Part shown: in pieces, positions 2,955 through 63,823 of the stretch
Position numbering within the stretch: the first letter of the stretch is position 1
Layout of the letters: every line of letters starts with the position of its first letter
Assembly: GCF_036365525.1 (NCBI RefSeq)
Contig: NC_090404.1
Location: 4,774,001 to 4,838,000, forward strand
Length of the DNA: 64,000 nt
DNA from: Heterodontus francisci
Lineage: Eukaryota
Direction: 5' to 3'
The notes under the pieces: model-generated
What the model saw: the letters and a program-made list of their open reading frames with translations, nothing else
Told to the model about the DNA's origin: nothing
Databases searched by the model: none
Translations under genes and position numbers: made by a program

Positions 2955-3002
2955 CTGCAGTCACCGTCACCATGGTCCCTTGTCCCCAGTAGTCAAGATA
3001 GT
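2955..3002 (-). CDS. IGHJ: IgM heavy-chain JH segment (YLDYWGQGTMVTVTA)
   Basis: WGQG motif; 3' donor GTAAG starting at 2954; upstream 23-RSS. Confidence 0.97.
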
Positions 3003-3041
3003 CACAGTGTTACATTCCCTGGGCTGGGTCACACAATAACC
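3003..3041 (-). promoter_or_regulatory. JH 23-bp-spacer recombination signal sequence
   Basis: On + strand: CACAGTG (3003-3009), 23 nt spacer, ACAATAACC (3033-3041). Confidence 0.95.
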
Positions 3042-3367
3042 GGCTCTGCACAGAATAGTGAGAAATCCATTATTATTTTAAATATCCACACTCCAGAGGC
3101 AAAATCAAATCTTGATGGTTCTTTGTAAAATTATAACTGTGTTAATAATTCTTTTCACTCTTTATAAATTTCCCTGATGTTTTATATTTCACACAGTAAC
3201 ATATCAGCAATTATTGAAATCACCAACTGATGAATGAATAATTAATCCGTTTATCCAAAATAAACCGTGCTAGGAGGACAGTGCTGGACACAAATAGTAC
3301 TTCACTGTATATATAGTTGTATTGTTAAGGCGAGCTCTGACCCAGAATCATCAATTAGTGCTGAGGG

Positions 3368-3436
3368 AGTTTTTGTATTGACAGTAACTGCTGTGCCACC
3401 CAGTATATCACAGTGAGACAAACCGTGTCAAATACT
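3368..3436 (-). other. IGHD: IgH D2 segment (coding 3396-3408, ATATACTGGGTGG) with 12/12 RSSs
   Basis: AGTTTTTGT-12-TGCTGTG on the left; CACAGTG-12-TCAAATACT on the right; matches the classic shark D2 12/12 arrangement. Confidence 0.95.
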
Positions 3437-3748
3437 GCGGCGGACTGTTAACTGTGAAATACAGAGATTACATTTCACAGCGCTCTCAAAAACATGATTC
3501 CGATTCCCCTAAGAGTACATCAGTGAGATAATTCAGTTTATACCTGTCATTATATTTATAAAGGAGATTGGAATATTTCTGAATCATCTGTGCTGATTCA
3601 GCGTGACAGTCAACATGAATGAAGCTGGAGACTTTTATGCAATTTTACAAATCTTTATTGCATTTCCCCAATTTTTTATTTAATCCTCATTGTTTACGGA
3701 CCATCTGCCGTGTTAGTGATCGCTGGTTTGTGCAAACTCCCTGTATGG

Positions 3749-3829
3749 GGTTTTTGTATGAGGAATTCGCTCTGTACAGCACCGTGACCCACTGCTGTAC
3801 CCACAGTGACACGAACCTGCACAAATACT
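3749..3829 (-). other. IGHD: IgH D1 segment (coding 3787-3801, GGTACAGCAGTGGGT) with 12 (V-side) and 22 (D2-side) RSSs
   Basis: GGTTTTTGT-22-CACCGTG on the left; CACAGTG-12-ACAAATACT on the right. Confidence 0.95.
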
Positions 3830-4212
3830 GCACTCACTCTCTGTTCAGTACTGCCTCCCACTATTCACTTCAAATAGAAATTCACTTCTGATCTAATTCA
3901 GAATATATTCAAAAGTTTACACCATGCAGGAGTAATTGAACCAAGTAACTCCCTCCAGGTCTCAGTCACATTAAAACCAGCATCTTATCCAGATCTGCAA
4001 TTGCTGACACTGTAAACATTAAAAATCAGCACAGACAAAATTACTCATCAGTACTTCGGTTAGTGTCTGAGATTTGTACCATTGAATTTTCACTGTGCTA
4101 GCTCTGTCAGAGACGGTCTATGGCCTGGTTCTGAACAACGCCGTTAATATTGTATTTAATAAAATTACTGACCGTCAGTTTATGATCGAAGTTGTCGAAT
4201 TCCCTCTCCATG

Positions 4213-4251
4213 TGTTATTGTACATGTCCAGCCCTGGTTCCTCTCGTTGTG
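4213..4251 (-). promoter_or_regulatory. VH 23-RSS with variant heptamer
   Basis: Minus strand CACAACG, 23 nt spacer, ACAATAACA, directly after YYCARD. Confidence 0.9.
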
Positions 4252-4556
4252 ATCTCTTGCACAGTAATAAATGGCGGTGTCTTCAGTCTTCAGTTTCTTC
4301 ATGTCCAAAGCGAAGATGTTTTTTGAAGTGTCTTTGGACGCAGTAAATCGATCTTTAATCTCCGGGGCGTAGTTGTTGCTGGATGAACTGTAGTAGTAAA
4401 CTATCCACTCCAGCCCCTGCCCGGGAACCTGTCGGATCCAGTACATGCTGGAGCTGCCAAGAGTGAACCCGCTGGTTTTACAGGTCAGTCTCAGGGAGCC
4501 TCCGGGTTTCCCGGTCTCTGCCTCTGGCTGAGTCAACACGACATCCGAATGGACAC
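4252..4556 (-). CDS. IGHV: IgM VH exon ([22 protein letters not shown]...[12 protein letters not shown]...[10 protein letters not shown]), open frame
   Basis: Both canonical Cys and the Trp present, no stops, acceptor TTTTTACAG, followed by an RSS. Confidence 0.97.
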
Positions 4557-4684
4557 CTGTAAAAAAATATCAAAAACCCCGAGGATTAATCCTGGTGAAA
4601 TGATTCCTGACTCTATAACTTTCCAGAGAGAGACTAACACTGAGACGGTAACAGTGAGAGACTCGGACAGTAAAAACTACTCAC

Positions 4685-6861: not shown

Positions 6862-7081
6862 NGAAAATACATTCTGTAATTGATAAACATGCTTGTTTGC
6901 GTGGATGGAGGCATAGCTGCAACGATGCAGGGATGACTAGATAGTTGGATGGCTGAATAAAAGCAAAATACTGCTGATGCTGAAATTCTGACATCAAAGT
7001 GGAAAGTGTTGGACATACTCAGCAGGTCTGGCAGCAACTGTGGAGAAAGAAACAGAGTTAACGTTTAACGTCTGTGCAGTA

Positions 7082-24913: not shown

Positions 24914-24919
24914 ACAGAC

Positions 24920-39520: not shown

Positions 39521-39547
39521 AGTACCATGCATCCCTGAAGTACTGCG

Positions 39548-40042
39548 GGGCTCATGGCGCAGAAATGCAAGGTGATGTTGGAGATCAGGGCATTGCCAAT
39601 CGCTAGCTCAGTAATCTTGGCATCTTTTGTCAACATAGAAACAAACCAATTAATGATGTCGGTGTTCCTGTGTACATTCCCTCCATTAAGATGAAGCATA
39701 TACTGTGCCGGCTGCCCAGCGTGCTGACTGCACCAGTACATATAAGTGTTAGAATCGTTTCTCGTTTCAAGCTGCACAGTCGTGTGATGTTACTTTTCTC
39801 TTCAATTGTCATTTCAAGGACAGTCTGTTCAATTGTGTCTTGGTGGTTCAATTATAAGAGAATATCATAGTAATAGTCATGATTCGAAGCATTATCATCA
39901 CCACCATCTCAATGAACATAATTATTATCATTTGACCAATAATGAAACCTAGGTTGCAGCAGGGAAAATGCATTTTTGCTTGAAAGGAAACATTACAGTA
40001 AAGTAATTTAATGATTATTAACAGTGGCAGCCTGTTCCATAT
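39548..40042 (-). pseudogene. TCR alpha/delta-type V pseudogene (leader 39997-40042, V ~39548-39851)
   Basis: 46-nt leader (I)WNRLPLLIIIKLLY with GT donor; DTIEQT..LC[fs]..YMYWCSQHAGQPAQYML..HFCAMS; degenerate heptamer CGCAGTA. Confidence 0.7.
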
Positions 40043-40489
40043 GATGCTTTCTGAGTCTGTAATTCTGCAGTCTGGAAAATCCGCTGTCTGAGCGAACGCA
40101 TTTCCTAACCCACTGACCTTCTAACTCAGCCAGTGCCAAACAGGGAACAGCGACAGCAATTTCTCCATAAACACAGGGGAAGCAAGGCGGCTCAGAGACA
40201 GAGCAACTGAAGTTTTGCGGGCGGGGCTGCCGCGGGGGGCAGTGTTGACACACGGAGGATTCATTTGTAAGGAACTGAATTCATTCATAATGTCGCAATC
40301 TGAAATTGTATAACTCTGCCTGTCTCTAAGAGTTGTTTTACTTGCGTAATTATTGCACATTCGCTACAAGCAGGCTTGCGATATGAAAGACAGAATTATT
40401 ATATTATTTACAAGTTACCGAAATCTTCATCAGTGAAGTGGGTTAAAACTCGGGTGGGAATGTAACGGTGGGAAATGGAATGAAATGGT

Positions 40490-41040
40490 AATAAAAGCAA
40501 AATACTGCAGATGTTGGAAATCTAATAGGACAAGGTCACAGAAAATAACTGAGCATCAGGTCATGGACCAAAGGCAGCGGTATGTTAATGTGTGGTCACA
40601 TACAAGCGTTACTGCAGAGAGGGTGCACATTGACAGAAAATGAACAGCCCTGACCCCAAGCACAATCATGAAAAAAACTGAGTAGGCACAATAGAAACAA
40701 ACGAAGCAAATTAAAATAAAATAAAAGAAACAAAGAAAAAAGAAAAAAGAAAAAATAACTAAGAATAAAAATTAAAAGGTGGGTCCGTCATGCACTGAAA
40801 TTTTTGAACTCATTGTTCAGTCCGGCAGGCTGTAGTGTGCCGAATTGGTAAATGAGATGCTGTTCCTCGAGCTTGTGTTGATGTTCACTGGAACACTGCA
40901 GCCATCCCAGGACAGAGATGTGGGCATGAGAACAGGGGGTGTATTGAAATGGACAGCAACCGGAAGCTCGGGGTCGTGCTTTCGGACTGAGTGGAGGTGT
41001 TCCACAAAGCGGTCACCCAAACTGCGTTTAGTCTCCTCGA
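40490..41040 (-). mobile_element. Penelope-like element 3' fragment (GIY-YIG end plus terminal repeat)
   Basis: LGDRFVEHLHSVRK..LPVAVHFN. Confidence 0.75.
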
Positions 41041-41239
41041 CATTGGGGACGGAAGTGACTGTTCAGAGAGGTAGAAATGGACGGGAGAAGAAATTCCAGC
41101 CGGTCGAATAACAACTCGGCACTGTTTCTTCCTTTCCAGTTCTGTAAGGTCGCAGTCTCTATTTCTGAAGTTCAGACTGGAACCGCAGAGATAAAACTCT
41201 GCCTGACACCGCTTATTGTCCTGATCACAGGTCGGTACC

Positions 41240-41664
41240 ATTAGAAACTCCCTGCAACATTCGCCAATCATCATTAAATTTCCCATCTCCAGCTGTGGGT
41301 CACTTTCACTTTATTATACTTCATCTAACATGCTGGGTGTCCGCTGTTTATTTTCAGAGATGGGTAACAGAGACTCAGGGCTCCAGTAAGAACAAGGAGT
41401 TGGATCAGTAAATTTAGCAATAATCTATAGTTGTTCTGCATGGTTTCACTTGCCAGCTGTAACCTGTTCTGGTATCACCAGTATCCACACCGAGCTCCTT
41501 AGTATCTGTTCAGAACCGATAGTCACGAAAATAAGGAAACGGCTCCCGGTTTTGAACACTTCAGCGGTAATCTCAACCGGATGCAAGGCACTTTTCTCCT
41601 GCCTTTGAAAGGCTTGAGGATCACAGACAACGACTATTATTACTGCACCATAAGACCCACAGTG
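41240..41664 (+). pseudogene. TCR delta/alpha-type V pseudogene (V exon 41358-41657)
   Basis: NLFWYHQYPHRAP*YLFRTD..FSGNLN..GLRITDNDYYYCTIR followed by CACAGTG (41658-41664); nonamer lost; decayed leader containing IIIK. Confidence 0.8.
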
Positions 41665-41767
41665 AATAAGATTCCTCGAGCAGAACACAGGTCGGCATTA
41701 AGGGTGGGCGCCAAGAAAATACATGGGATTGAATCCCATTTCAGTTTGCACAGAAAATGAAGGGAAT

Positions 41768-42290
41768 ATGCACTTTTTGCGAGCTATTTTCTCAGTCAGT
41801 GCTCTCACCGTTGTGAAAGGTAACATTTTTGCAGCATTTGAATCTTGGGTCAAATTCAGATATTCCCAGCTACCTGTTAACAATGACTTGCAGATCTCTG
41901 GGATGAATAACAGGATCGATCTGTCCAAGTAACATATCCGTCAGGCCACATCTTGCAAAGTTTCTGGAATTGCATTGGTAACAAAAGCGGCTGAATGAAA
42001 TCATCACTTTACTGGTACAAGTTGAACATAAGTGATACCGCACACCGATTTGAAGAGGAGTGGCTACTTATAATGTCCCTGATAGCCTTAGGACTGTCTC
42101 AATGATGTTCATGCTCGGGAGGGTATTCATTCATACCAGGGCTTGAGAGCAAATCGAATTATTTCACCTTAATTAGAGAGAGATCTATTTCTCATATAAC
42201 ATAAAGATATCCAGTTAGACAACAATGGAGACAATGTGAGAAAGAAGCAGAAAGACTGCCAACGAGATAAACAACAAGTGACTGAGACAG
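41768..42290 (+). pseudogene. Degenerate leader plus V-type Ig domain with no recognisable RSS
   Basis: Leader MHFLRAIFSVSALTVVK-G with GTAAC donor (41768-41819); acceptor at 41893; in-frame NC..SSLYWYK..LFLI*HKDIQLDNNGD with many stops. Confidence 0.55.
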
Positions 42291-42542
42291 GGAGAAAGAT
42301 GCACAAACGTATTCAGGGAAGAAAGTATTGGTGAGACACAGCAGTAATTAGTCCTCAACGAACCTGATTGGTTCACAGTTGACATAATATCTGAGCCACC
42401 AGCCAACGTAACCCAGAGAAACACCCGTCCGTTTTCCAATAAGTGAATTCTGCCTCGATCAAAGGTCATTCTTCAATATCGGATTGGAAAATTAACAATT
42501 AAAGCATTCTACTATTTTCAGTCGAACGCTAAACCAGACAGC

Positions 42543-43009
42543 ATGTGCTTCCTACGTTTCTTACTGATGATACTGGTCTTGTTGTCCGGTGAACCTATGT
42601 TTAAAAGATCAGTGTGTCCTCCATTGGTTATATTCAGTCTTCTAATTTCGACTTCTGTGTATTGTTACAGGAATGAGTGGTGACGATTCAGTGTCCCTGG
42701 ACCCACTTGAATTAACGGTTCAGGAAAGACGGGCGGTAATTCTGAACTTTAGTTACACGACAGCGTAGCCTGACTTAAATCTCTTCTGGTACATGCAGTA
42801 TCTGAGGGAAGCTCCGAGATTTTACTGAGAACATGCAGCATGGTACAGGGGGATAAATCTCCAGATTTTCCAGATTCTGGTGAATTGGTCAAAGAAAAGA
42901 AAACAGTTCCTTCAAAAGTCGACGGGGCTCTTGTCTCTGACTCTGCGGTGCGTTACTGAGTCCTCCGCCTCACACTGTCAGAGGAGCGCAGTCTGTCAGT
43001 ACAAACATG
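42543..43009 (+). pseudogene. TCR alpha-type V pseudogene with 23-RSS
   Basis: Leader MCFLRFLLMILVLLS-G (42543-42588); V 42671-42970 DSVSLDP..LFWYMQYLREAPRF..SDSAVRY*; RSS CACACTG-23-ACAAACATG; both Cys lost. Confidence 0.85.
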
Positions 43010-43744
43010 TCAAAGGACTCTCACCTCCTCTCACTGAATCTAGATTGTTATCTGATAATGGAACACAAACCAAACTATGAAGATAAACACATGGGTCAAT
43101 TTATAGATGGGTAGTTCATTAAACAGTTAGAAAGATAAATGGACAGTCTCGCCGCCTTCACTTTCTCCTTCAATGATCTCTTCCTCCTTTGTTTGAAAGT
43201 ATCCAGCTGCTGCAGACAAGCGCCTGTGAATTCCGGCTGTGGAGTCTGTGAGTATAAAGCTCAGTGTGTTTCACAGCTCAGTAACGGGTTGGTTCTTGTT
43301 CGTTTGGGAGCTGAATGATGAGATAGTTGGACATTAGCACTTCAGTCATCATTCCGATTGCCCGACTGCAACATAACCAAGAGGTGGATCGGATCATGAA
43401 GAATATAAAACAGTTAACTCTGGATATAACTTTAAATTAAATTGCGGAATTATAGCTTAGGGACACGGGTTCAAACTATGAAAGGTCATTTCAGGACCGG
43501 TATCAGGAAATTCTTCAGCAATCAATGCGTGGAATCAAGTTCCAGATGCAACAGAAGATGGTCAAACCTGGGATTAATTTCATAAAATGATGGATATTCC
43601 AAAGGCGAAGGTTGGAGCAGGATGGGGTTGGAGGCATGTTGGTGTTAAACAGTCTATCCTAAGAGTGGCAGAATTCCAACTCCCGCCCTGCATGATCCTG
43701 TGATCTTGTGATCAATCGCAGGAGTCGGCAATTTCTTTTGGACA

Positions 43745-43778
43745 TGCAGTCGCTTGTAGTCACCAGCAGAGGGCACTA
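43745..43778 (+). promoter_or_regulatory. CTCF motif with upstream (U) module
   Basis: TGCAGTCGC-spacer-CACCAGCAGAGGGCACTA. Confidence 0.65.
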
Positions 43779-44300
43779 AATGTCTTCACTGTGTTGGTGT
43801 CAATGTGGCAGCGACTGCAGCTTCAGTATTGAGTAACTTTACTGAAGAAGCGGATTGAAGAAAAGTTTCGGTAACAGAAACATTCATTTCAAATGGAAGT
43901 TGTTTTTATCGATGTCATGATGAAGGAATAAAATATTATTACTAATGGCGATATTCTGCATTTTGTAAGAAGCCGATCACCACAGAATCACTCAGTCCAT
44001 TTGTTGTGACACTCCGCCACTCTCCTCAAAGCTGTCAATTATTCCCTATTGCATTCAAGTAAAAGGTGCTGGCTGTCTCGTTTATCTGCAGAACAACTGC
44101 AAACTTGTTATGCTGGCTGTGGGAAATTCTAATGAGCAGTGCACAGGTCTTCTCGTGGAATTCAATGGCACAGATGCCAGGACAACATGAATTATTTTCC
44201 TCATGCACCAGCCTCACAGACTGGCTCTGTTAAAGGGCCAACATTGAGTTTTAACCCCGTCCAGTTCCCTGTTGTGAGAACAATTTCCCTGTTCACTGCT

Positions 44301-44460
44301 CTGATGTCATCAATTCTGGATGAAAGGACCGAAGAGCTGATTGGATGAATTGCAGTACTAATGCGCTGAGTGCTGATTGGATGAACTGGAGAATAAAGGA
44401 TTTGTGATCTGATTGGACGAATTAAACAACAAAGGACCCGTGAGTTGACTGGATGTCACC
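44301..44460 (+). promoter_or_regulatory. V-gene promoter: 36-bp-periodic inverted CCAAT boxes with CRE-like TGATGTCA
   Basis: CTGATTGG at 44337, 44373 and 44409; variant units at 44301 (CTGATGTCA) and 44445. Confidence 0.6.
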
Positions 44461-44590
44461 TGCTGTCCAGGCCAGCAATGGACCTATCGGGAGAAAGGCT
44501 GGATATCGAACAGCATCTTCGAAAGGCCTGATGAAAACAATTCCAGCTTCAATCAGTTCAGTTCATATCAGCCCACAACTGTCTGAAAAC

Positions 44591-45448
44591 GTGTTGGATG
44601 TTACTTTTTATTTATTCCTCACAGCTGCAGCTCTCTTAACTGGGAAGTTCACAATTTACACAAGGCCGCCTTTCACATCTTGATCATATAGTTCATCGGT
44701 CTGTTCCCTGAAGACAAGGGTAACAATCGATTGATCGGAAGTGAACAAAGCAATCCGGATCTACCTTGAGTCAACACTGAACACTGTTTGAGCAAACTCG
44801 ACAAGCTCCCCCAATAAGAGAAATTGGAAGAGTTGAGCTGAGATTACAGGGGAATGGCAGACAGACATGGTCCTCCCCACCAGGGCTAATGACAGACACC
44901 GATAGACACACGAGTCTTACACCCATAGGCCGTTTGTAGGCTTCCCTTTACAGTCGATCCCAGCACCTTCCTGTTGCAGCTTCTGAACTGTGGAAAGTGT
45001 ATTTGTGCTTACCTGTCCTGAATTCTCAGTTAAGTATTGGGGGTGACGGGCTGATTCTGGGAGATAGACGTTGGTTAATTTAATATTGCTCTGTTCTTGC
45101 AGGACATTGTCGAGGAGACTCCGTTTCACAGACACCGGCTGTAATCACAGTAAGTGAAGGAGACGATGTTCGGTTGCACTGCGATTATACAACTACAAGC
45201 AGCAGCAATCCTTACCTATTCTGGTACCGTTAGTATCCCAGTGGATACATGGAATATCTGCTGCAAAGAAACAAATACAGTGAGGACCGAGAAAGATTTC
45301 CAGAGGACCGTTTTTCAGCGGAGCTCGATGATTCGATCCGAACCATCCCGCTGAAAGAATCTAAAACAGAACTGACAGACTCTGCGGTGTACTACTGCGC
45401 ACTGAGACCCACAGAGACACAGAGCTGGGCTGATCCTGAACAAAAACT
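44591..45448 (+). pseudogene. Near-intact TCR alpha/delta V gene (leader 44591-44642, V exon 45103-45409, 23-RSS 45410-45448)
   Basis: GDSVSQTPAVITVSEGDDVRLHCDY..YLFWYR*YPSG..DRFSAEL..TDSAVYYCALR; single TAG at 45231; CACAGAG-23-ACAAAAACT; putative leader has a GTG start and GG donor. Confidence 0.92.
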
Positions 45449-45749
45449 GTCAGAGAGTCTCTCAACATAACAGCAAGTTAGGGAAACATTGTGATTGGAG
45501 GCGAGTGTCTGCATTAGTGATTAGAACTTGTACTGTTAATGTTAATATACAGTTATCCTTTTTCCTGCAATGTTTCACTTTTCAAATAATGATCTAATTT
45601 CCTTTTAAAAGTAACGATTGAATCTACCTCCACCAACATTTGCAGGCAGTGTCTTATGGAGCATAACATCTCTCTGAATAAAGGCAAAATTCTCTTCCTT
45701 TTTCCTCTGTTTCTTTTTGCAAGTATCTATGTGTTTTTGCAGATTGGCA

Positions 45750-47200
45750 ACACCGGACAGCCCGCTTCTACCTCCTTCCAAAAATTCACAAACAAGACTG
45801 TCCTGGCAGACCCATCGTTTCAGCCTGTTCCTGCCCCACTGAACTTATTTCTTTCTTTCTTGACTCTATCTTTTCTCAACTGGTCCAGTCTCTTCCCACC
45901 TGCATCCGTGACTCTTCTGAAGCCCTACATCGTATTTGACAATTTCCAGTTTCCTGGCCCACACCACCTCCTCTTCACGATGGACGTCCAATGTTTCTAC
46001 ACCTCCATCCCCCACCAGGAAAGTCTGAGGGCTCACCGCTTCTTCCTTGAACAGAGGTCTTCGTTATGCCTGCCTTTTTGTGGGATATGTCGAACATTCC
46101 TTGTTCCAGTCCAACTAAGGCCCCCTGACCCAACTCGTTTTCCGGTATATTGATGATTGTATCGGTGCCGTTTCCTGCACCCGCCCCGAACTGGAAATCA
46201 TTGTCAACTTTGCTTCTAATTTCCACCCTTCTCTCACCTTTACATGGTCCATCTCCGACACATCCCTTCCCTTCCTTGACGTCATTGTCTCCATCTCTCG
46301 GGATAGGCTGTCTCATATAAGCCCACAGACTCCCATAACTACCTCGACTACACTTCTTCACACCCTACCTCCTGTAAGGACTTTATTTTATTATCCCAGT
46401 TTCTCGGTCTCCAAGGCATCAGTTCCGATGATGCAACCTTCGGCAACAGCGCTTCTGACCTGTTTTCCTCTTTCCTCAACACAGCATTCCCCGTACCATC
46501 CCACACCACCTCCCACGCTCCACCCCCACAGCCACACTGTTGTTGACGGGGCCCTTCAACCATGTCTGGCCTATTTCCCACACTTCTGCCCGCACCCCTT
46601 CCCCTCCATCCCAGAACCGCGACAGGGTTCCCCTTGTCCTCACTTTCCACCTCACCAGCCTCCATATCCAAAGGATCATCCTCCACCATTTCTGCCACGT
46701 CCAGCGTGATGCCAATACCAAACGCAGCTTCCCCTCCTCTCCCATGTCAGCATTCCGAAGGGATCATTCCCTCCGCGACACCCTAGTCAACTCCTCCATT
46801 ACCCCCAAAGGCCGTCCCCTTCCTATGGCTCCTTCCCATGCAATCACTGGAGGTGCAATACCTGCCCCTTTACCTCCTCTCTCCTCACTATCCACGGTCC
46901 GAAACACTCCATTCAGAAGAAGCAGAGGTTTGCTTGTACTTCCTTCAATGCAGTATACTGTATTCGCTGCTCGCAATGCAGTCACCTCTGCACTCGGGAG
47001 ACCAAAGGCAGATTGGGTGACCGCTTTCGGGAACACCTCTGCTCAGTCTAAAAACATGCCCCGAGCTTCTTGTCGCTTGTCATTTCAATACCCGCACCCG
47101 CTCCCACCCATACAAAGCCCCGCCCCTCCCACCCTCCAACTCCCCCCACCCCTCCCCCCAACTCTGCTCTCTTGCCGAATTCTCTGTCCTGGACTTGCAG
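45750..47200 (+). mobile_element. Penelope-like retroelement (RT plus GIY-YIG), degenerate
   Basis: LFTMDVQCFYTSIPH, RYIDD, AFRRDHSLRDTLV, YCIRCSQC..ETK.RLGDRF. Confidence 0.85.
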
Positions 47201-47214
47201 CAGTGTTACGTGTG

Positions 47215-49020
47215 CTGTGGATAGAGTGGAACCAGTGGATGGAGCTTACTTAGGTTTCCAGAAGGCATTTGATAAGGTGCCACATCAAAGGTTATTGCAG
47301 AAAATAAAAGCTCATGGTGTGGGGGGTAACATATTGACATGGACAGAAGATTGGTTAGCTAACAGCAACAGAGAGTAGGCATAAATAGGTCAGTTTCTGA
47401 ATGGCAAGATGTAACGAGTGGTGTGTCACAGGGATCTGTGCTGGGGCCTCAACTTTTTACAATTTATATAAATGACTTCAATGAAGGGACCGAAGGTATG
47501 GTTTCTCAATTTGCTGATGACATAAAAATGGCTGGAAAGTAACTTGCAAAGAGGACATAAGAAGGCTACAAAGGGATGTAGATAGGTTAAGTGAGTGGGA
47601 TAAGATCTGGAAAAGTGTGTATAATGTGGGAAAGTGTGAGATTGTCCACTTTGGCAGGAAGAATAAAAAAGAAACATGTTATCTAAATGGTGAGAGATTT
47701 CCGAGCTGTGAGATGCAGAGGGATCTGGGTGCCCTAGTGCATGAATCGCAAAAGGTTAGTATGGAGATACAGCACATAATTAGGAAAGCTAATAGAATGT
47801 TATCGTTTAATTGAATACAAAAGTAAGCAGGTTATGCTTCAGCTATAAAGGACGTTGGCGTGACCACATCTGGATTACTGTGTACAGTAACTGGTTCCTC
47901 ATTTAAGGAAGGATGTAAATACGTTGGAGGCAGTAGAGAGATGGTTTCCGAGACGAATACCTGGAATGGATGGGCTTTCTTACCAGGAAAGGTCCTGGGG
48001 AAAATTGATATACAGAGAGATTTGGGTGTTCAGGTCCATTGTTCCCTGAAGGTGGCAACGCAGGTCAATAGAGTGGTCAAGAAGGCATACGGCATGCTTT
48101 CCTTCATCGGACGGGGTATTGAGTACAAGAGTTGGCAAGTCATGTTACAGTTGTATAAGACTTTGGTTCGGCCACATTTGGAATACTGCGTGCAGTTCTG
48201 GTCGCCACATTACCAAAAGGATGTGGATGCTTTGGAGAGGGTGCAGAGGAGGTTCACCAGGATGTTGCCTGGTATGGAGGGCGCTAGCTATGAAGAGAAG
48301 TTGAGTAGATTGGGATTATTTTCATTCGAAAGACGGAGGTTGAGGGGGGACCTGATTGAGGTGTACAAAATCATGAGAGGTATAGACAGGTTAGATAGCA
48401 AGAAGCTTTTTCCCATAGTGGGGGATTCAATTACTAGGGGTCACGAGTTCAAAGTGAGAGGGGAAAAGTTTAGGGGAGATATGCGTGGAACGTTCTTTAC
48501 GCAGAGGGTGGTGGGTGCCTGGAACGCGTTGCCAGCGGAGGTGGTAGACGTGGGCATGATAGCATCTTTTAAGATGTATCTAGACAGATACATGAATGGG
48601 CAGGAAGCAAAGAGATACAGACCCTTAGAAAATAGGCGACATGTTTAGATAGAGGATCTGGATCGGCGCAGGCTTGGAGGGCCGAAGAGCCTGTTCCTGT
48701 GCAGCAATTTTCTTTGTTCTTTGTTCTTTGAAAGATAGGATAAGGTTGGCTTGCATCAGCTGGAACTTAGAGGAGTAAGAGGCGACTTGATTGAAACATA
48801 TAATATCTTGCGGGGGCTTGACAGGGTGGATGTGGAAAGGATGGTTCCCCTTGTGGGAGAATCTCGAACTGTTACTGTTTAAAATTAAGGTGTCGCCCAT
48901 TTGAGACCGAGATGAGGAGAATTTTTTTCTCTCAGAGGGTCGGCAGTCTTTTGATTCCTCTTCCTCAAAAGGCAGTGGAAGCAGAGTCTTTGAATATTAT
49001 TAAGGTACAGTTAGATATTT
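47215..49020 (+). mobile_element. CR1 RT remnant with a nested young CR1 3' insertion (47988-48729)
   Basis: FQKAFDKVPHQRL; nested copy has an open frame and a (TTCTTTG)n tail. Confidence 0.85.
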
Positions 49021-49581
49021 TATTTCTTTTCATCATTCGTTTTTTAACCATGTGTCTGCCCACTTTTTGTTCGTGTTTGTGCTTTTGGCTTGGGCTGTTC
49101 ATTATTCTGTCATTTACATCCTCTCTGCACTAATGCTTCGTCCTTCACCACACGATTGGCACTCTCTTTGCCTTTGCCTTTGCCCCATGACCTCCTTGTC
49201 TGTTAATCGTTGACCATCTGTCCTATCAACACTTTCCCTTTTGTTCCCTTTACCCCCAACCCCGCTTTATTTGTATCTAAGCTATTACATTTCTAAACTT
49301 TGCCCATTCTGATGAAAGGTCAGTCACATGAAACGTTAACTCTGCTTCTCTCTCCACAGGTGCTGAGTGTTTCCATCACGTTTTATTTTTATTAATGTTT
49401 TTGTGTCCAGCTATTACTGACCCTCCCTCACACGGGCAACAGTTTCTCTTTATTCACTCTATCAAAATCCATTTTTTCTTCATATGTCACTCAGTGATCT
49501 TTTATTCTTTATATTGTATCCTGCTTTTGTTGGGATTTACTATTCACACATTCTCTAAATGTTTCTCTCTCTATCCTGCAG

Positions 49582-49919
49582 AGAGCGGCCTTGAAGGCAT
49601 CACTCATCAACCAAAAGAAAATGTGACAGCTCGGGGAGGAGTGATCTCCACCATGACGAGCTCCTATACTGAGGTGACGAGAGTTTGCCTGGACTGGTAC
49701 CGGGATGGTCTCTCCTGGATCCGGAGAAATTCTCATCTACTGCACCGACGGGTTCATTGACAATTCGTCTTTTGCAACCCGGCGCTTCACCACATCTTTG
49801 GTCAAAAAATACACAGCCATCAGTGAAACAGTTTCACAGGTGGCGGCTGCCAGGAAATACTTCTGAGTCTTAACACCGCACACAGCCGTGTAGGTTGGGA
49901 AAGAGCCTATACATAAACT
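49582..49919 (+). pseudogene. TCR alpha/delta-type V pseudogene with 23-RSS
   Basis: Acceptor CCTGCAG; ..SSYT..CLDWYR..DNSSFATRRFT..KYF*VL; CACAGCC-23-ACATAAACT (49881-49919). Confidence 0.75.
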
Positions 49920-50703
49920 GAAGATGTAATGACAAGAATACTGTGTCAGTGAACTCGCGGTATCATTGTATTTCATGATCGCTACTGAGTGCAATGGTCC
50001 AATGGAGAAGCGTAACAATTCTTTCATCCATTTTTCCCTCAGTGTATCATAAACGGACAGATTGACAATTTTATCGAACATTGTGCACCCAAAGGATTTT
50101 ATTTTTGTTGACCACAAATTACCGATATCTCGAAAACACTTGGACTCCCAAATTCCTTCATTCCTCCACAAGAGTCAGCGTCAGAATCAATGACACCATT
50201 TCTGGCACAGAATTCCACATTCATACTTCTTACTTTGTGATAAACTTCCTTTTATTTAAAAGTCAATCTTCTGCTGTTTGAAAGCTCACACTATTGGCTA
50301 TCTTTATTGTCGCTGTTTCCACAGGGACCAGCAGAGTTTCTTCTTTGCTTTGCATTGTTACAGTCCATTTTACCAGATTGTGTTGATGAGCGGTCACCTC
50401 CTCCTGGGAATGCCCCGCCCACCCACCCCCAACACCTTGGATTCAGTCTCCAATCCTCTCAGTGATCCTCTCCGCTCAAGAGGACACCTGTCGGGACCTA
50501 GGAAGCTCCCGGCAGAAAGGAGGTTCTGTTTGGAATGACTCCGTTATTGACTGGGCAGAGGAGGGCTGAAGCTCCCACAATTCACATCAGCTTGCAAACG
50601 CCTGGGATGTCGCTGACAGTGACGTTTCAGTCAATGATATTGCATTTGCGAATGTGTGGGTAGTGAGCCATCTGACACCAACAATCAAGACCATCAAGAT
50701 TTT

Positions 50704-51632
50704 GAAAGCAAGAAATGCTGGAAATACTCAGTAGGTATGGCAGCATCTGTGGAGAAGAAGCAGAGTTAATGTTCACTGGAACGGGCAGAGATGTGAGAGC
50801 GGGGGGACTGCTGAAATCGCAAGCAACCGGAAGCTCGGGGTCATGCTTTCGGGCTTGGCGGAGGTGTTCCACAACGCGGTCACCCAGTTTGCGTTTGGTC
50901 TCCCCAATGGAGAGGAGACCATATTGTGAGCAGCGAATACAGTATACTACAGTGAAAGAAGTATGAGTAAATCGTTGGTTCACCTGAAATGAGTGTTTGG
51001 GGCCTTGGATAGTGAGGAGAGAGGAGGTAAAGGGGCAGGTATTACACCTTCTGCGATTGCAGGGGAAGGTGCCTTGGGAAGGGGACGAGGTGTATTGGTA
51101 AATGGAGGAGTGGACCAGGGTGTCGCGGAGGGAATGATCCCTTCAGAATGCAGACATGGGAAGGGAGGGGAAGATGCATTTGGTAGTGGCATCACGCTGG
51201 ACGTGGCGTAAATGGCGCTGGATGATCCCTTTGAATATGGAGACTGATGGGGTGGAAAATGAGGACAAGGGGAACGCGTTTCTGAGAGGGGGGGGAAGGA
51301 GTGAGGGTAGAGGTGCAGGAAATGGGCCGGACATGGTTGAGGGTCCTGTCAACCACAGAGGGGGGAAATTCATGGTTGAGGAAAAGGGGAAGTCATATCA
51401 GAAGCGCTGTCATGGAAGGTAGCATCGTCAGAGCAGATCCATCGGAGACTGGGACTAGTGTCTGGGAGAAACTGGGAGAATGGAATGGAGTTCTTACAGG
51501 AGGCTGGGTGTGATGAAGTGTAGTCAAGGTGGCTGTGGGAGTCGGTGGGCTTATAATGGATATTAGCAGACAGCCTATCCCCAAAGATGGAAACGGAGAA
51601 GTCGAGGAAGGGAAGGGCAGTGTCGGAGATGG
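50704..51632 (-). mobile_element. Penelope-like element inserted into a V-gene leader exon
   Basis: LPFLDFSV, HYKPTDSH, VYCIRCSQYGLLSIGETKRKLGDR; flanked by MGNR (ATG at 51644) and ILMVLIVGVR (~50700). Confidence 0.8.
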
Positions 51633-54239
51633 ACGGTTTCCCATGATATTTCCTGAATCTGTAACTCTGCAATGCAGGAGAATCTCTGACGGAGCAGAAA
51701 TACAAATCCCACTCCCCCTCCACTGCTGATCCAACCAATGACAAGAATGGACCCGCGGCAGCACTCCCTCCAATAACACAATCGGGTCAGAGCAAGAGCA
51801 GCAAATGGAAGTTGTGGGCGAGGATGCTGCAGACTCAAAATTTGAGTGAAGTGTGAGGCGACACTCTGCTGCACTCGGAACTGATTGAGCGGGAATAGTG
51901 TCTGTTGAATCTCCAGAATTCAGTGGCTATTCTCCACCTGCTTACTGTTCAGTTGACTGGGAAATTTAGAGTGGAAGGAGAATGAAGGTACCAGAATAAG
52001 AGAATCTGAGAGCACAGAGTGAGGCCATTCGGCCTATACTCCCGATGCCTCTTTGGAAGAGTTCACTAATTCATACCTCACCCCCTACATTTTTCGCATT
52101 GTCCTGTTTTGTTGTTCATTTTCAAGTATTTTAGAATTCCCTTTCGAAAATTGCTGTTCAATCTGCTTCCACCACCCTTTCAAGCAGTACATTCCAAATC
52201 TTAACAAATCACCGTGTATTAAATATAACTCAATTTTCCCTGTCATTTTTCAACAACTATTTTAAATTGGAGGCCTTGGGATACACAATTTTATGCCAGT
52301 GGAAACAGTTACGTGCAATCTACTCTATACTGATATATGGAGAACAATCCCAGCTTTCTCTCGTCCCTCTGCATAAAAGTTCATCATTTTACTTATTCTT
52401 TAATCGGAGGTGGGCATCTCTGGTGAGGTCAGTATTTAATACTTGTCTCTACTTGCCTTTAATAAGGTGGCGGTGAGCTGCCTTCTTGAACTACCGCAGT
52501 CCTGGGGGTGCAGGTTCACCCACAGTGCTATTAGGAAGTGAGCTCCAGGATTTTGATCCAGCAACAGTGAAGGAACGGCATTTTAGTTTCAAGTCAGGAT
52601 GGTGTGTGGTTTGGAGGGGAACTTTCAGCTGCTAGCGTTCCTATGTATCTATCGTCCTTGTCCTTCCAGGTGTTAAAGATCACGGGAATGGAAGGTACTG
52701 TCCAAGGCGTCTTGGTGCGTTGCTGCAGTGCATCTTGTAGATGGTACACACTGCTGCTACTGTGTATGGGTGGTGGAGTGAGTGAATGCTGAAGGTTGTG
52801 GATGTGGTGCCGATCAAGCGGGCTGCATTCTCCTGGATGGTGTGGAGCTTCCTGACTGTTGTTGGAGCTGCACGTCTATAGGCAAATGGAGGGTATTCCA
52901 TCACACTCCTGACTTATGCATGTAGGCGGTGGACAGGCTTTGTGGAGACAGTAAGTTAGTCACTCGCCGCAGAATTCCTAGCCTCTGACCTGCTCTAGTA
53001 GCCATAGTACTTTTATGGCTGGTCCAATTCAGTTTCTGGTCAATGATAACCTGCAGAATTAGGTACGTGGGGGATTCAGCAATGGCAATGGTATTGTACA
53101 TCAAGGGAAGATGGTTCGATTCTCTTTTGTTTGAGATGGTCATTGCCTGGCACCTGCTTTGTGTGAAGTTTACCTGCCACTTATCAGCCCAAGCCTGGAT
53201 GTTGTCCATGTCTTGCTGCATCTGGATACGGACTGCCACAAATGGTGCTGAACATGGTGCAATCCTCAGCGAATATACCAATTCTGACCTTATTATTGAT
53301 GGAAGGTCATTGACGAAGCAGCTGAGGATGGTCTTTCCTAGGACACTACCCTGAGGAACTCATGCAGTGATGTCCTGGGACTGAGATGATTGACCTCCAA
53401 CAACCACAACCATCTTCATTTGTCCAGGTATGACTCCAACCAGCGGAAATGTTCCCCCTTGATTCTCATGGGCACCCGTTTTGCTCAGGCTCCTTGATGC
53501 TATACTCCTGCTACCATTTTGGTTTACTTCCTCTGCACTCGCTTCAATGTCTTGAGATTCTTTTTCAATAGTGGGGACAGCTGTTAAGCAAACAGGCATA
53601 TAATTTCCTGTAGTCTGTCACACCCCTTTTTGCGAGTTTTCAATCCTCTCGGAGGTTTCCAGAATCTAGGGTATTTTGGGAGATTGCAACCAATACATCC
53701 ACTATCTCTACAGTGACTTCTTTTAAAGGGAGATGGAATGGAGCAAGGTGAGGGGATCCCTCGGCTGGTGTTCAGTGAGTTCAGGAAGATGGTATCAGAG
53801 GGAATGGAGCAGGGAGAGAAGATTCCTGGGGTGATCTTCAGTGAGTTCAAGGAGATGGTGTAAGAGGGAATAGAGCAGAACAAAGAGGAAGTTCATCTGA
53901 GGCGGCGGGGGGGGCGGGGCGGGGGTGCGGGGGTGTTGCGGAGGGCAAAGAACGAGGTATAGTAGAAATGATGGAGGCAGTGATTCAACATGTGCATAAC
54001 AGAAAAGTGGACACTGTGTGTGTATCTGACAGAACAGGTGGACAGTGTGGTTTGTGTATATAACAGTAAATTTGAAGTTAGAGTCGATGTGTCAGATAGG
54101 CCTCAGAATCCGGGGCTCATTCCTACCGTTTGTCCTCACTCTTGTGTCTACCAGATCCCAGGCTCTGGGAGTCATCCCAGCAAATAACTTGATTAAAATT
54201 CATTGAAACCCTAATTAACTAATTAATTAATAAATAGAG

Positions 54240-60366: not shown

Positions 60367-60498
60367 CTGTAAAAGAGGGATAAAAGAATGAAGCAGAGAT
60401 TTCGTGGTCTTGGACATTCATCTCAGAACTATGAAATTTTAGAGATTTGTTAAACAGCTTCATTTAATTTGAAATGTGAGTGGATTGAATATTCTCAC

Positions 60499-60626
60499 CT
60501 TCACCAGAGTGACGGCAGCGCTGTAGAAAATGCTCAGGAAGAACAGGATGATGAATGTGGAAGCGGTTGTCCAGATGTTGCCGCTCTCTTCCTCATTGTC
60601 TTCAATCCAGATGTGGCCTGTGTAAT
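60499..60626 (-). CDS. IGHM: IgM TM1 exon ([43 protein letters not shown])
   Basis: Conserved mu TM motif; phase-1 acceptor; GTGAG donor. Confidence 0.96.
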
Positions 60627-61189
60627 CTTCGGGTTTTTAGAGGAGAAATATATTTAGATCGTTCATTAATCCAGGATATAAGATTGTCAATTTGCACTCG
60701 CAGAGTTCTTCCTTAAGCCATTATTTTGCTCTCTAATTTAATTTTCAATTTGTATCTATTGTGAAGATAATCACTCTTAGCAATCTACCTCTGTTACTAA
60801 CCCCACAGCCATTCTTCCCATATGATCCTCGTCCAGGCCCTGTTGGAAAATATGATATTTCTTTCTTCAGGGTCAGGCGCTATTCTCGTCTGGATCAATC
60901 TTGTTCTATCATTCGGGATATCGATGGAATTTTACTGATCAATATCGATAGTTTTGAGATTTTCATTGGTGCTGGGTAAGAGATTGGATGCGAGTTCTAA
61001 TCTTGTTTATTTGTGATGGAAGTTGTTGGTCAATCATTAACTGACCTCAGTTTCTAAGTGAAAACTTTGCTTCACTGTGTTTGTAGGTCCAACATGTATG
61101 AGGGAATATGTTGGAGAAGGTGCCCATTCAAACAGTGCATTTGAATGCTACTTTCACATATCGCCTGGTGCTTTTGTTTGTACGCTTTA

Positions 61190-62110
61190 ATACATGTGTA
61201 TGTGTGCATAAGTATCTGTTACTTTGCATCACTCAGTGCGTGTCCATGGCTTGTGTGTGTGAGATTTAATGTATGTTTTAATGCGTTTCTTTGTGCACCC
61301 GCCTGTGAATGTATCAATGTGCGTATTTATATCTTGATGCCCGTGTGTTGTGTCCCTGTATGTCAGTATGTGCTTATGTGCCAATGTGTATCAATGTGTG
61401 TTTTCAAGTGGCCGCGTGTGTGTGTATGTGCATGTGCGTGTGTATAAAATATATCATCCTTAATGTTTTATCTTCATTCATCCATGTGTGTGCATGAGCA
61501 TGATAATGTTTGTTTTTGTGTGTGGTTTGGTCCCCATGCGTGCTTCATGTTGTGAGCTTTTGTGTTGACAGATGTCTTTATGTTTTCCTGTGTGTCAATG
61601 TGTGTTTATGTTTCCATGTGTGCGTATGAGTTTGTTATTGTTTCTTTTTGTGTGCTTCTGTCCCCATAAGTGTGATAATGCGTCTGCTTTTGTGTTGATG
61701 TCTACGTTTATGCATTAATATGTGTGATTATGTGTACATGTGTGCTAATGTGTGTGTTATGTGCATGTTTTTGCATCCATGTATGTGTCATAATGTTAAT
61801 GTTGGTGTCTATTTGTGTGTGAGTGATCGTGTTAATGTGTCTGTTTAAATGTTTGTGTGCAGATGTGTTTGTCTGTTAATGTGCGAGTATGTTTCCATCT
61901 AGCTGTGTTTATGTCTATGATAATGAAAGCTTTTCCGTCTATGTTTCTGTGTTTGTGAGACTGTACTAATGTGTACATTTATGTTTATTTTTGCGTGGGT
62001 GACTGTGAAGTGTTTATATCTGCGTTTGAGTCTGTTTGTGTGTGTAGGTGTAAGTGTGTGGTTGTGCATTTGAGTGTGTTTATGTGTGTGTTTTTGTCTG
62101 TGTGCCTGCG
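61190..62110. repeat. Degenerate TG-rich low-complexity tract in the Cmu4-TM intron
   Basis: Visible (TG)n-derived composition. Confidence 0.85.
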
Positions 62111-62273
62111 CATCTTTATTCTTGTTCAAAGTTTTACAGAGAATAAATAACCGGGTCTGACCCTGACGGTGTGCATTATGGAGAATATTCTTCACTGTTC
62201 TGTGTATAAATGTATTCTGTGCGAGATGTCATCTGACATCATCTGAATGACTGCAACAATGCAACTGATGGAT

Positions 62274-62442
62274 AAAAACAGAAGTTCTGGAAATACTCAG
62301 CAGGTCAGACAGCAGCTGTGGACAGAGAAGCAGAATTAACGTTTCAGGTCGGTGCCCTTTTCACACACCTGAAATGTTAACTCTGCTTCTCTCTCCACAG
62401 ATGCTGCCTGACCTGCTGAGTATTTAAGCATTTTCTGTTTTT
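62274..62442. mobile_element. Inverted pair of Penelope-type terminal repeats (~75-bp arms)
   Basis: 62274-62349 is the approximate reverse complement of 62367-62442. Confidence 0.75.
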
Positions 62443-63428
62443 ATTTCAGCTTTCCCCTGTCTGCAATATTTTGCTTTTATTTCCATGAAACTGATGGGCC
62501 TCAGAATCATCAGGAACAGGAGATGATTAAATCTTCAGCTAGATTTAGATGATTAGATTATTAGAATTTAACCGGGAGACCGTGAACGATATTACGTTAC
62601 ATAAATATATATTTTACAATGTGATTCCCATGTGGAAAGTTTAAAATCTTCGCACACTGCGCTCGAAGCCGACTTTGTACTGATGGCATTTGAGTCCATT
62701 TAATAGAGAGCAGGGGGACTGGGAGTATAAGGTTTACAAATGTCCTTGCCCCTTTTTCTGTTGGAGGAAATATGGGGAGGAGCAACAGTCAGTTCACAAT
62801 TCTCTTTACCGTCTGTCTGTTGCAGAAGTACCGTTGCAGTGGATTCACAAGTACCCTTTCCTCTTTGTTTGGGAAGTGGGGTACAGTGTTTTAGTAAATT
62901 CCTCTTCCCCCTCTTTCTGATGGGGGATTTTGGGAAGACTTCGTATTCGTGTGTGGCCATCACTTCAGTTCCCAGTGTGCATGATGCTGCAACTAAAAAC
63001 TGACCCTATTCTGAAGGGATGGCCAACACGAGAAGCAGGTACACCGAGATCTAAATGCACTGCGTATTTTTGTTGGTAAGGGGAAATGTCCAGATTCCCC
63101 ATCTCCTCCTCCCCGGCCCCCCACCCCTGTCCCCCTCTAATGCTCCCCACCGCCTCCCCCTCCTCCAACGGGAGGAAAGTTGCTGAAATTCTTCCACAGA
63201 ATCCAATAATGAATCAGGTTTACTCTGTGAATTAATATGTGCTGGAAACACTGGTTGGACAAGACTTGGGCCCGAGACCTGCAAATATCATGCTTTGATG
63301 AAAAGACCTACACTTAGCAAATGTGTGAAGCCCAATTCATTGAGCTGTTGTGTATTTAAATCGCGATTGGAAGAAAAGGTCTTTATTGTGTTTTTTTATT
63401 TAAGAATTGAAATGCAATCGAGAAATTC

Positions 63429-63823
63429 TCATTGACATGAATTAACGGTGTCCAACAGTGCAAGGGAAATGTTCACAAAACTCGGTTTACCGCTGGATTT
63501 ATTAACTGTTCTGTTGATGATCTTCAAGGGGATCGCTTCATGTCCCACCACACAGGAGTAAGAAGCGCCGCTGGCCCACTCCTCCGCTGCAATGGATAAC
63601 AGGCTGTAGATGAAGAAGGAGCTCTTGTCGTTCTCCGCCATCACCTCGGTGTTCTTGTAGTTGCCGGGATTCACCGACTTGTCATTGACAGTCCACTTGA
63701 CGAAGATCTCTCGGGGGGAGAAACCTCTCACTAAGCAGGTGAGGGAGAGGAACCTCTCTGCGGAGACTTCTTCTGCTGGGGGCAGGAGAACAGACACAGA
63801 CGGTTCCCGCAGATCTTTCCATG
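63429..63823 (-). CDS. IGHM: IgM Cmu4 exon plus secretory tailpiece of the neighbouring cluster
   Basis: [21 protein letters not shown]; internal donor G|GTAAA after 63491; tail [20 protein letters not shown] with NIS glycan site and penultimate Cys; two AATAAA at 63400-63395 and 63387-63382. Confidence 0.98.

Follow-up and report, generated by a model that had tools for sequence, protein, structure and literature searches.

IgH-like V segments (TAILV / VH-delta) are located inside the TCR alpha/delta locus, and trans-rearrangements of IgM/IgW VH segments to TCR-delta occur in sharks. V exons of TCR alpha/delta type situated between IgH clusters have been described in four elasmobranchs, both sharks and rays, in one sentence (section 6) and a schematic (Flajnik et al. 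2025, Sci Adv, PMC12227049). The same paper describes the antigen-receptor complex (AgRC), in which IgM, IgW, and IgNAR miniclusters show linkage to TCR alpha/delta. TCR V segments between IgM clusters are thus an already known arrangement, reported in 2025 (PMC12227049), and the "reciprocal arrangement" that the original prediction inferred for the locus studied here had already been published.

The window is a 64,000-nucleotide stretch of the Heterodontus francisci genome (NC_090404.1, positions 4,774,001 to 4,838,000). It contains parts of two IgM miniclusters (A and B) and a spacer of ~56 kb separating them, and an array of five V relics (V1 to V5) is found inside the spacer (Table 1). These are very probably germline TCR alpha/delta-type V segments that have become non-functional relics, four of them certain and one probable. 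Cmu4/TM1 and VH-D1-D2-JH share the minus strand; V1 is also on the minus strand and V2 to V5 are on the plus strand, in agreement with the mixed orientation that had been predicted for the V relics. Both predicted flanks, an IgM TM exon and an IgM VH, were found, but they do not directly adjoin the array; the distance is 10 kb on the TM1/Cmu4 side and 35 kb on the VH side. The V-D-D-J of minicluster A lies past the window end. The cluster B VH shows 82% identity to an Ig heavy chain V region from Heterodontus francisci, and it scores 226 bits with a VH HMM and 59 bits with a TRA/DV HMM. The predicted absence of TCR D, J, and C from the window was borne out for J: the IgH JH is the sole J-like element, and no TCR J-like element was found in the window. 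Debris like that between V4 and V5 is present at 38.0-39.5, 40.8-41.3, and 50.6-51.9 kb, and most of the spacer (4.6-60 kb) is filled with it.

Table 1. Coordinates of the features in the window.
Feature	Position	Strand	Parts and signals
IgM minicluster B, 5' part	2955..4566	-	VH-D1-D2-JH
JH, cluster B	3002-2955	-	23-RSS and splice donor
D2, cluster B	3408-3396	-	3' RSS, 12-spacer
D1, cluster B	3801-3787	-	RSSs with 12- and 22-spacers
VH exon, cluster B, open	4566-4252	-	heptamer CACAACG 4251-4245
Assembly gap (N)	6495-6862		
Spacer ORF, RVT_1 domain	19216-19695		
Spacer ORF, RVT_1 domain	35633-36292		
V1, TCR alpha/delta-type V pseudogene	39541..39851	-	coding relic 39851-39548; degenerate heptamer CGCAGTA 39547-39541
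V2, TCR alpha/delta-type V pseudogene	41358..41664	+	V exon 41358-41657; perfect heptamer CACAGTG 41658-41664
V3, TCR alpha/delta-type V pseudogene	42543..43009	+	leader 42543-42588 (46 nt); V exon 42671-42970; RSS CACACTG (42971-42977)-23-ACAAACATG (43001-43009)
V4, best-preserved TCR alpha/delta V pseudogene	44591..45448	+	leader 44591-44642; intron 44643-45102; V exon 45103-45409; good RSS CACAGAG (45410-45416)-23-ACAAAAACT (45440-45448)
Retroelement and repeat fragments separating V4 and V5	45593..49330	.	repeat families D2/D3, inverted pair I8
V5, probable V-segment relic	49484..49919	+	leader-like ORF from 49484; acceptor CAG 49579-49581; V-exon relic 49582-49880; RSS-like end CACAGCC (49881-49887)-23-ACATAAACT (49911-49919)
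Spacer ORF, GDSL esterase	54923-55309		
Spacer ORF, RVT_1 domain	57843-58358		
IgM minicluster A, 3' end	60463..63797	-	Cmu4 with secretory tail and TM1
TM1 exon, cluster A	within 60636-60463	-	peptide read
Cmu4 exon with secretory tail	63797-63432	-	C1-set E = 2e-21

Each coordinate at which the original prediction had placed its at least five V relics corresponds to a real landmark. The splice acceptor CAG is directly before 41358, 42671, 45103, and 49582 on the plus strand, and V1, on the minus strand, has its final coding base at 39548. The three heptamer-23-nonamer RSSs that had been predicted are those of V3, V4, and V5. Leaders, predicted for most of the relics, are intact in V3, decayed in V4, and represented by a leader-like ORF in V5; in V2 the leader is doubtful, and V1 lacks one.

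V1 to V5 are all pseudogenes, with stops, frameshifts, or lost signals in each. V1 has one frameshift near 39770 and a substitution of Tyr42 by Cys, and neither a splice acceptor nor a leader was seen on reading its sequence. The nonamer is lost in both V1 and V2. The N-terminal half of V2 has stops and frameshifts throughout, including a TAG following WYHQYPHRAP, and its 3' end, YYC-T-I-R-P-T, resembles the germline ends of fish TRA/DV. The V3 leader retains the ATG, a hydrophobic core, and the GT donor, and is followed by a phase-1 intron of 82 nt with a CAG acceptor. The V exon of V3 is disrupted by a TAG in CDR1, a change of Cys23 to Phe, a stop and a frameshift past FR2, and a TGA at Cys104. 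In V4, whose phase-1 leader is homologous to that of the bamboo-shark (Chiloscyllium punctatum) protein P0002, the lesions were checked against P0001 and P0002. There are three: GTG in place of the start ATG (44591), a splice donor mutated from GT to GG (44643-44644), and a TAG at an FR2 codon (45231-45233) that is Gln in P0001 and P0002. A polymorphic V4 allele may be intact at the 45231 codon, and the leader lesions would persist in it. A start codon, splice sites, an open V exon, and both cysteines, as in a functional V gene, are found together in none of the five, and V1 to V5 are predicted to have no coding function.

The 23-RSSs of V3, V4, and V5 are formally 12/23-compatible with the 12-RSSs of IgH D and of TCR D-delta/J-alpha. 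RAG cutting at these RSSs is possible, and it could be expected to yield non-productive joins only. It is possible, if rather doubtful, that V1 to V5 are not orphans at all and are instead the distal members of a TCR alpha/delta V region that is very large, still in use, and interleaved with IgM clusters. In that case, this spacer would hold pseudogenes only, and intact neighbours elsewhere would rearrange over a long range to TCR D-delta/J-alpha. The retention of the 23-RSSs in V3, V4, and V5 is consistent with such use, and so are contigs of V4-family paralogs in a putative RNA run (X5), in which leader and V exon are correctly spliced together. However, the array in the window contains no intact V, and no V(D)J joint involving V1 to V5 was seen in the contigs. 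Contigs matching the locus read through the RSS in germline form.

The assignment of the relics as TCR alpha/delta-type was examined with a profile HMM made from 102 TCR alpha/delta-type V proteins (the TRA/DV HMM) against the whole window translated in six frames. It matched the IgM VH and the sites of V1 to V5, the last not significantly, and nothing else in the window. The scores were 52 + 82 bits for V4 (E = 5e-24), 37 + 8 bits for V1 (E = 4e-10), and 17 + 32 bits for V2 (E = 1e-8), and V3 was matched in three collinear pieces (19, 15, and 15 bits). The TRA/DV and VH profiles gave 45 and 8 bits for V1, 49 and 13 bits for V2, 50 and 0 bits for V3, and 134 and 31 bits for V4, respectively. 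In the phylogenetic tree, V4 clusters with bamboo-shark P0001 and P0002 with 99% support, V1 and teleost TCR alpha/delta V proteins fall together in a set with 97% support, and V3 is paired with a coelacanth TRA/DV-type V. V4 is 63% identical to P0002, and the named relatives of P0001 are all "T-cell receptor alpha/delta variable". From Trp to Cys, V1, V2, and V4 each have 174 nt, compared to 177 nt in the VH, a spacing canonical for a V-set Ig domain. The profile and tree comparisons indicate that V1 to V4 are clearly to be classified as TCR alpha/delta-type rather than VH-type, as had been predicted for the whole array, and the prediction found no protein-level support for V5.

Two other origins were rejected. 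A VH-type V, like TAILV / VH-delta, would not give VH profile scores of 0-31 bits against 226 bits for the VH of the window, and V1 to V4 are outside the VH clade, which has 100% support. A non-rearranging IgSF V or VJ exon (UrIg/UrIg2-like or other), the grouping that the original prediction had named as speaking against it, does not fit a heptamer-23-nonamer after the coding ends and the lack of a J motif.

The structure matches resolve the class of V4 best. Apart from a few delta chains, nearly all PDB matches of the N-terminal half of V4 were TCR alpha chains (best E = 2e-9), and the N-terminal piece scored 26.3 bits with Pfam V-set (cut-off 26). By these PDB matches, V4 would be closer to TRA/DV than to all other V classes. 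The V1 pieces leaned to alpha in PDB, where the class was not discriminated. The formal class comparison of V1 to V3 covered the VH set only. It is unlikely that some of the relics (V2, V3, and V5) are Ig light-chain, TRB, TRG, or "intermediate" V segments and not TRA/DV. The PDB matches of the V2 pieces, which are compatible with this, include Ig light chains as well as CD4 and TCR alpha, and none is significant; the N-terminal piece of V3 has no PDB match, and V5 has no match anywhere. The RSSs of kappa-type V segments have 12-spacers in the well-studied mammalian loci, and shark light chains may differ. The spacers of V3 and V5 are 23, unlike the mammalian kappa type. V2 and V3 are placed among teleost TRA/DV proteins in the tree, with 42% identity over 62-81 columns, and they are related to each other and to V4 at the DNA level (z = 4.5-6.9 among the three; z = 4.5-4.6 for V2 against V3 and V4). 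The germline ends of V2, V3, and V4 resemble the C-A-L-R-P-T type of fish TRA/DV, which also argues against a light-chain, TRB, or TRG origin. V domains intermediate between TCR and Ig are, on the other hand, described in such regions (PMC12227049).

V5 is a probable V-segment relic by its gene-structure signals. The acceptor is pyrimidine-rich, and the V exon ends in Y-F-(TGA) directly before the RSS-like signal, the TGA being at the Cys104 position; frameshifts are also present. The composite 3' signature is present at three sites of the window (V4, V5, and VH), while 0.09 are expected from shuffles. The spacing from Trp41 to Cys104 is 169 nt. The TRA/DV HMM gave a non-significant 6.8 bits (E = 0.77), Pfam, PDB, and Atlas gave no support, and a DNA-level relation to V1-V4 was not found.

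The array may be a relic of a mixed Ig/TCR ancestral locus or a V block co-amplified with IgM clusters, the two alternatives of the original prediction. The DNA identity of V1 to V4 to each other is about 57%, and they represent different, anciently diverged V sublineages. Such divergence argues against local duplication of one orphan. Paralogous contigs of the V3-V4 block show about 91-95% identity, and at least one copy is represented in transcript contigs. As they include non-coding DNA, the whole V3-V4 block seems to have been duplicated; we infer this duplication history from few contigs. The read-based check covered 4.4 kb of the array. A misjoin through a repeat or the N gap, bringing TCR alpha/delta V segments to IgM as an assembly artefact, is very improbable: the gap between the array and cluster B, the dense LINE copies in the spacer that could mislead an assembler, and the 4.4 kb extent of the read check leave some room for it, but there is no N from the array to Cmu4/TM1 of cluster A, 41.2-45.6 kb are covered by overlapping DNA contigs of a public run with about 99% identity, and the same arrangement is published for four elasmobranch assemblies (PMC12227049).

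The window probably belongs to the antigen-receptor complex of elasmobranchs, in which TCR alpha/delta-type V exons are both in linkage with the IgH miniclusters and scattered among them. Segmental duplication may have increased the number of IgM clusters inside or next to a diverse TRA/DV V array, and neighbouring TCR V segments would have been carried along or stranded in the course of it. At a great distance from the TCR D/J/C recombination centre and no longer under selection, the stranded V segments would decay, presumably by point mutations, indels, and retroelement insertions.

The locus shares with the elasmobranch AgRC the V-D-D-J-C IgM miniclusters and a spacer between them that holds TCR alpha/delta-type V exons. 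It differs in that it is resolved here base by base, the V segments are pseudogenes of different sublineages, and three residual 23-RSSs are present. As in TAILV / VH-delta, Ig and TCR segments are mixed in one linkage group and their RSSs are 12/23-compatible; the direction is opposite, with TCR-type V segments among IgH clusters, and no use was seen. Mammalian Ig/TCR V pseudogenes and orphons likewise consist of a decayed leader, V exon, and RSS remnants among retroelements and are unused, whereas the relics here are among IgH clusters, and not in their own locus or on other chromosomes. V4 shares FR2 W-Y-R-Q, the C-A-L-(R/S)-P-T end, and the read-through into the RSS with bamboo-shark P0001/P0002 and teleost genes, and it is distinguished from P0001/P0002 by the stop at the FR2 Gln, the missing start ATG, and the mutated donor.

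All five V-gene relics (V1 to V5) in the spacer between the two IgM miniclusters are pseudogenes. A profile for TCR alpha/delta-type V genes (TRA/DV) was built from 102 proteins related to P0001, a V gene of the bamboo shark Chiloscyllium punctatum. Those relatives of P0001 that carry a specific name are all named "T-cell receptor alpha/delta variable". The profile was run against every stop-to-stop segment in all six frames of the window. Across the whole window it matched the IgH-type V gene (VH) and four other sites, and these four are exactly the first four V sites of the original prediction. For the fifth predicted site, V5, the V-gene architecture was recovered, but not a protein-level match (6.8 bits with the TRA/DV profile, E = 0.77).

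Positions of the V relics and IgM cluster elements, with total scores against the TRA/DV and VH profiles
Feature	Position	Strand	Evidence	TRA/DV (bits)	VH (bits)
V1	39845-39505	-	TRA/DV profile, 37 + 8 bits	45	8
V2	41452-41697	+	TRA/DV profile, 17 + 32 bits	49	13
V3	42652-42956	+	TRA/DV profile, three collinear pieces	50	0
V4	45090-45458	+	TRA/DV profile, 52 + 82 bits	134	31
VH exon, cluster B	4566-4252	-	open	59	226
D1, cluster B	3801-3787	-	RSSs with 12- and 22-spacer		
D2, cluster B	3408-3396	-	3' RSS with 12-spacer		
JH, cluster B	3002-2955	-	W-G-Q-G-T motif, 23-RSS, splice donor		
Cmu4 exon and IgM secretory tail, cluster A	63797-63432	-	Pfam C1-set, E = 2e-21		
TM1 exon, cluster A	within 60636-60463	-			

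The class of the relics was examined with a further profile, for VH, made from 76 proteins, and with a quick maximum-likelihood tree in which the V pieces were joined with X at every break. V1 to V4 score higher with the TRA/DV profile, and the window's own VH with the VH profile. In the tree, all VH sequences form a clade with 100% support, and V1 to V4 lie outside it. V4 groups with P0001 and a second bamboo-shark V gene, P0002, at 99%. V1 falls within a 97% set that includes teleost TRA/DV sequences, V3 is paired with a coelacanth V, and V2 is among TRA/DV sequences with no firm placement. The germline ends of V1 (C-A-M-S-P), V2 (C-T-I-R-P-T), and V4 (C-A-L-R-P-T) agree with the C-A-L-(R/S)-P-T ends of fish TRA/DV proteins. 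In PDB searches, for which exons and stop-bounded pieces served as separate queries, the best 60 matches of the N-terminal half of V4 were nearly all TCR alpha, with a few delta (top E = 2e-9); the C-terminal half was less selective. The V1 pieces lean to TCR alpha, the V2 pieces gave mixed, insignificant matches, and the V3 pieces had no matches in PDB. The Pfam V-set was reached by V4 and by the C-terminal half of V2, and by no other V piece. Thus the TCR alpha/delta class that had been proposed holds for V1 to V4 against VH, by profiles and tree. For V1 to V3, support for the assignment is good where VH is the alternative; where the alternative is a light-chain, TRB, or TRG class of sharks, the assignment is only probable.

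At the DNA level, V2, V3, and V4 are ~57% identical to one another (z = 4.5-6.9). V1 is barely related to the other relics and V5 is unrelated, so the array consists of several old V sublineages rather than recent copies of a single gene.

The relics have decayed in different ways. V1 has no acceptor and no leader, and it carries one frameshift and a Tyr42 to Cys substitution. The N-terminal half of V2 is scrambled, and a TAG follows FR2. Both have a heptamer without a nonamer, CGCAGTA in V1 and a perfect CACAGTG in V2. V3 keeps an intact leader (42543-42588) and a phase-1 intron of 82 nt, with a TAG in CDR1, Cys23 changed to Phe, a stop and a frameshift after FR2, and Cys104 changed to TGA. 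The least decayed is V4, in which the V exon is interrupted only by a TAG at 45231-45233, a position occupied by Gln in P0001 and P0002. The leader frame of V4 was set by comparison with P0002, because the hydrophobic cores of both leaders are homologous. In that frame, GTG stands at the expected start ATG (44591), and the donor is GG instead of GT (44643-44644). Three relics, as originally predicted, retain a heptamer-23-nonamer signal: V3 (CACACTG-23-ACAAACATG), V4 (a good signal, CACAGAG-23-ACAAAAACT), and V5 (CACAGCC-23-ACATAAACT).

V5 is probably a V relic, to which no class is given. A leader-like ORF is present, and the CAG acceptor at 49579-49581 is accompanied by a pyrimidine tract. 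TGG-TAC-CGG (W-Y-R) lies 169 nt upstream of Y-F-TGA, where the distance is 174 nt in V1, V2, and V4. The window contains three instances (V4, V5, and VH) of the composite pattern of a Y-(Y/F)-C codon, heptamer, 23-nt spacer, and nonamer, against 0.09 expected from shuffles. V5 pieces had no match in Pfam or PDB. In the ESM Atlas, one piece was without a usable match and the other gave chance SpoIIE matches. V5 and a LINE fragment are flanked by an inverted pair of repeat fragments (46813-47062 and 50838-51087), which are 81% complementary.

The DNA of the window is elasmobranch. The VH of cluster B, one of the two IgM miniclusters, shares 82% identity with an Ig heavy-chain V region of Heterodontus francisci and 73-78% with VH of bamboo shark and catshark. 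An exact look-up of the window's ORFs in the protein collection found none of them. With Cmu4 and TM1 at one end and VH-D1-D2-JH at the other, the window runs from the 3' end of cluster A to the 5' part of cluster B. The clusters are ~56 kb apart. A run of N at 6495-6862 separates cluster B from the rest, and 6863-64000 is without N. The cluster B VH heptamer is off-consensus (CACAACG, 4245-4251, minus strand). About 150 bp downstream of it, a consensus-like CACAGTG-24-ACACTAACC stands alone at 4057-4097 (minus strand), not preceded by any obvious coding segment. In cluster A, a long low-complexity tract lies between Cmu4 and TM1 (61000-62300, minus strand); its translations are His/Thr-rich, as is typical for CA-rich simple repeats.

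The spacer is mainly retroelement debris with repeated LINE copies. Pfam found reverse-transcriptase domains in three spacer ORFs and a GDSL-esterase in one. Ten long ORFs of the spacer, located at 8-23 kb and at 59.6 kb, had no Pfam domain. Two stop-free segments, 9135-9479 (+) and 22659-22955 (+), share a short H-C-Q-R-x-R-L-S-D motif and have no Pfam domain. A tandem array with a 34-nt unit in at least 18 registers occupies 24147-24958. The repeats at 40.8-41.3, 45.6-47.3, and 50.6-51.9 kb resemble Penelope-type elements, but such an identity had no Pfam support and is not claimed.

Read evidence came from contigs of one public sample, which bear neither on expression level nor on absence. 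DNA contigs overlap across 41200-45600 at ~99% identity, so the assembly is sound in this part. Numerous other contigs at 90-99% identity, chiefly on V exons and on the V4 leader, indicate that the genome holds relatives at other sites. A small run of the same sample, flagged only "RNA?", is treated here as putative RNA. Some of its contigs show a V4-like leader end fused straight to a paralogous V exon, where the DNA run has intron-like sequence. The V4 leader (44594-44643) is at least 90% identical to these paralogs, and the joined V exon reads G-A-D-S-V-S-Q. Such spliced contigs show that V4-family paralogs are transcribed and spliced. In one of them (~91% similar), 43247 is connected directly to the V4 acceptor (45103), and the interval left out is of the GT...AG type, indicating that the V3-V4 block, including its non-coding DNA, has one or more paralogous copies; identity of the block to its paralog or paralogs is 91-95%. 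The GTGAGT at 43248, ~280 nt past the V3 RSS, is a strong cryptic donor that is used in the ~91%-similar copy. Its splicing to a V4-like acceptor implies that transcription reads through from one V pseudogene to the following one. Contigs close to the locus continue past the RSS as far as 45500 in germline configuration, and the contigs matching the locus showed no V(D)J joint.

Very likely, V1 to V5 are the decayed remains of TRA/DV segments that were left stranded, or were taken along, when IgM miniclusters multiplied inside or next to a diverse TCR V array; they now have no coding function. The V genes may be orphans or distal members of a single huge V region that is still in use, and the block may have been co-amplified with IgM clusters. 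The absence of a TCR J, claimed for the window in the original prediction, was borne out: a scan for nonamer-spacer-heptamer followed by (F/W)-G-x-G found the IgH JH only. In the window, the RSS scan detected 12-spacer signals nowhere but at the IgH D segments. Cluster B is arranged as VH-23, 12-D1-22/23, D2-12 on the 3' side, and 23-JH, so the 23-RSSs of V3, V4, and V5 are formally compatible with IgH D segments, as with any 12-RSS. Such joins would be non-productive. VH-to-TCR-delta trans-rearrangements are known. It is conceivable, though very improbable, that intact relatives elsewhere in the array join their 23-RSS to the 12-RSS of IgM D1/D2-JH units. The resulting heavy chains would combine a TCR alpha/delta V domain with an IgM constant region, the reciprocal of those trans-rearrangements, and the decayed copies would be a remnant of a shared V pool.

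The window adds detail only. None of the TCR-type V genes in this spacer is alive, and they trace to several old V sublineages instead of to one duplicated orphan. Three RSSs are formally compatible with IgH D, at least one paralogous block exists, and members of the V4 family are transcribed. These details can serve annotation and, later on, a test of co-duplication across the genome. The arrangement itself is not a discovery. The reciprocal arrangement of the original prediction is present here, but it is not new, since TCR alpha/delta-type V exons between IgH clusters were reported in four elasmobranchs by Flajnik et al. 2025 (PMC12227049), who also consider what follows from it for trans-rearrangement and TCR hypermutation. 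The mixing of IgH clusters with TCR alpha/delta V genes bears on the divergence of Ig and TCR loci, and on why sharks form Ig-V/TCR chimeras and hypermutate TCR genes; this significance was already argued in 2025 from chromosome-level assemblies (PMC12227049).
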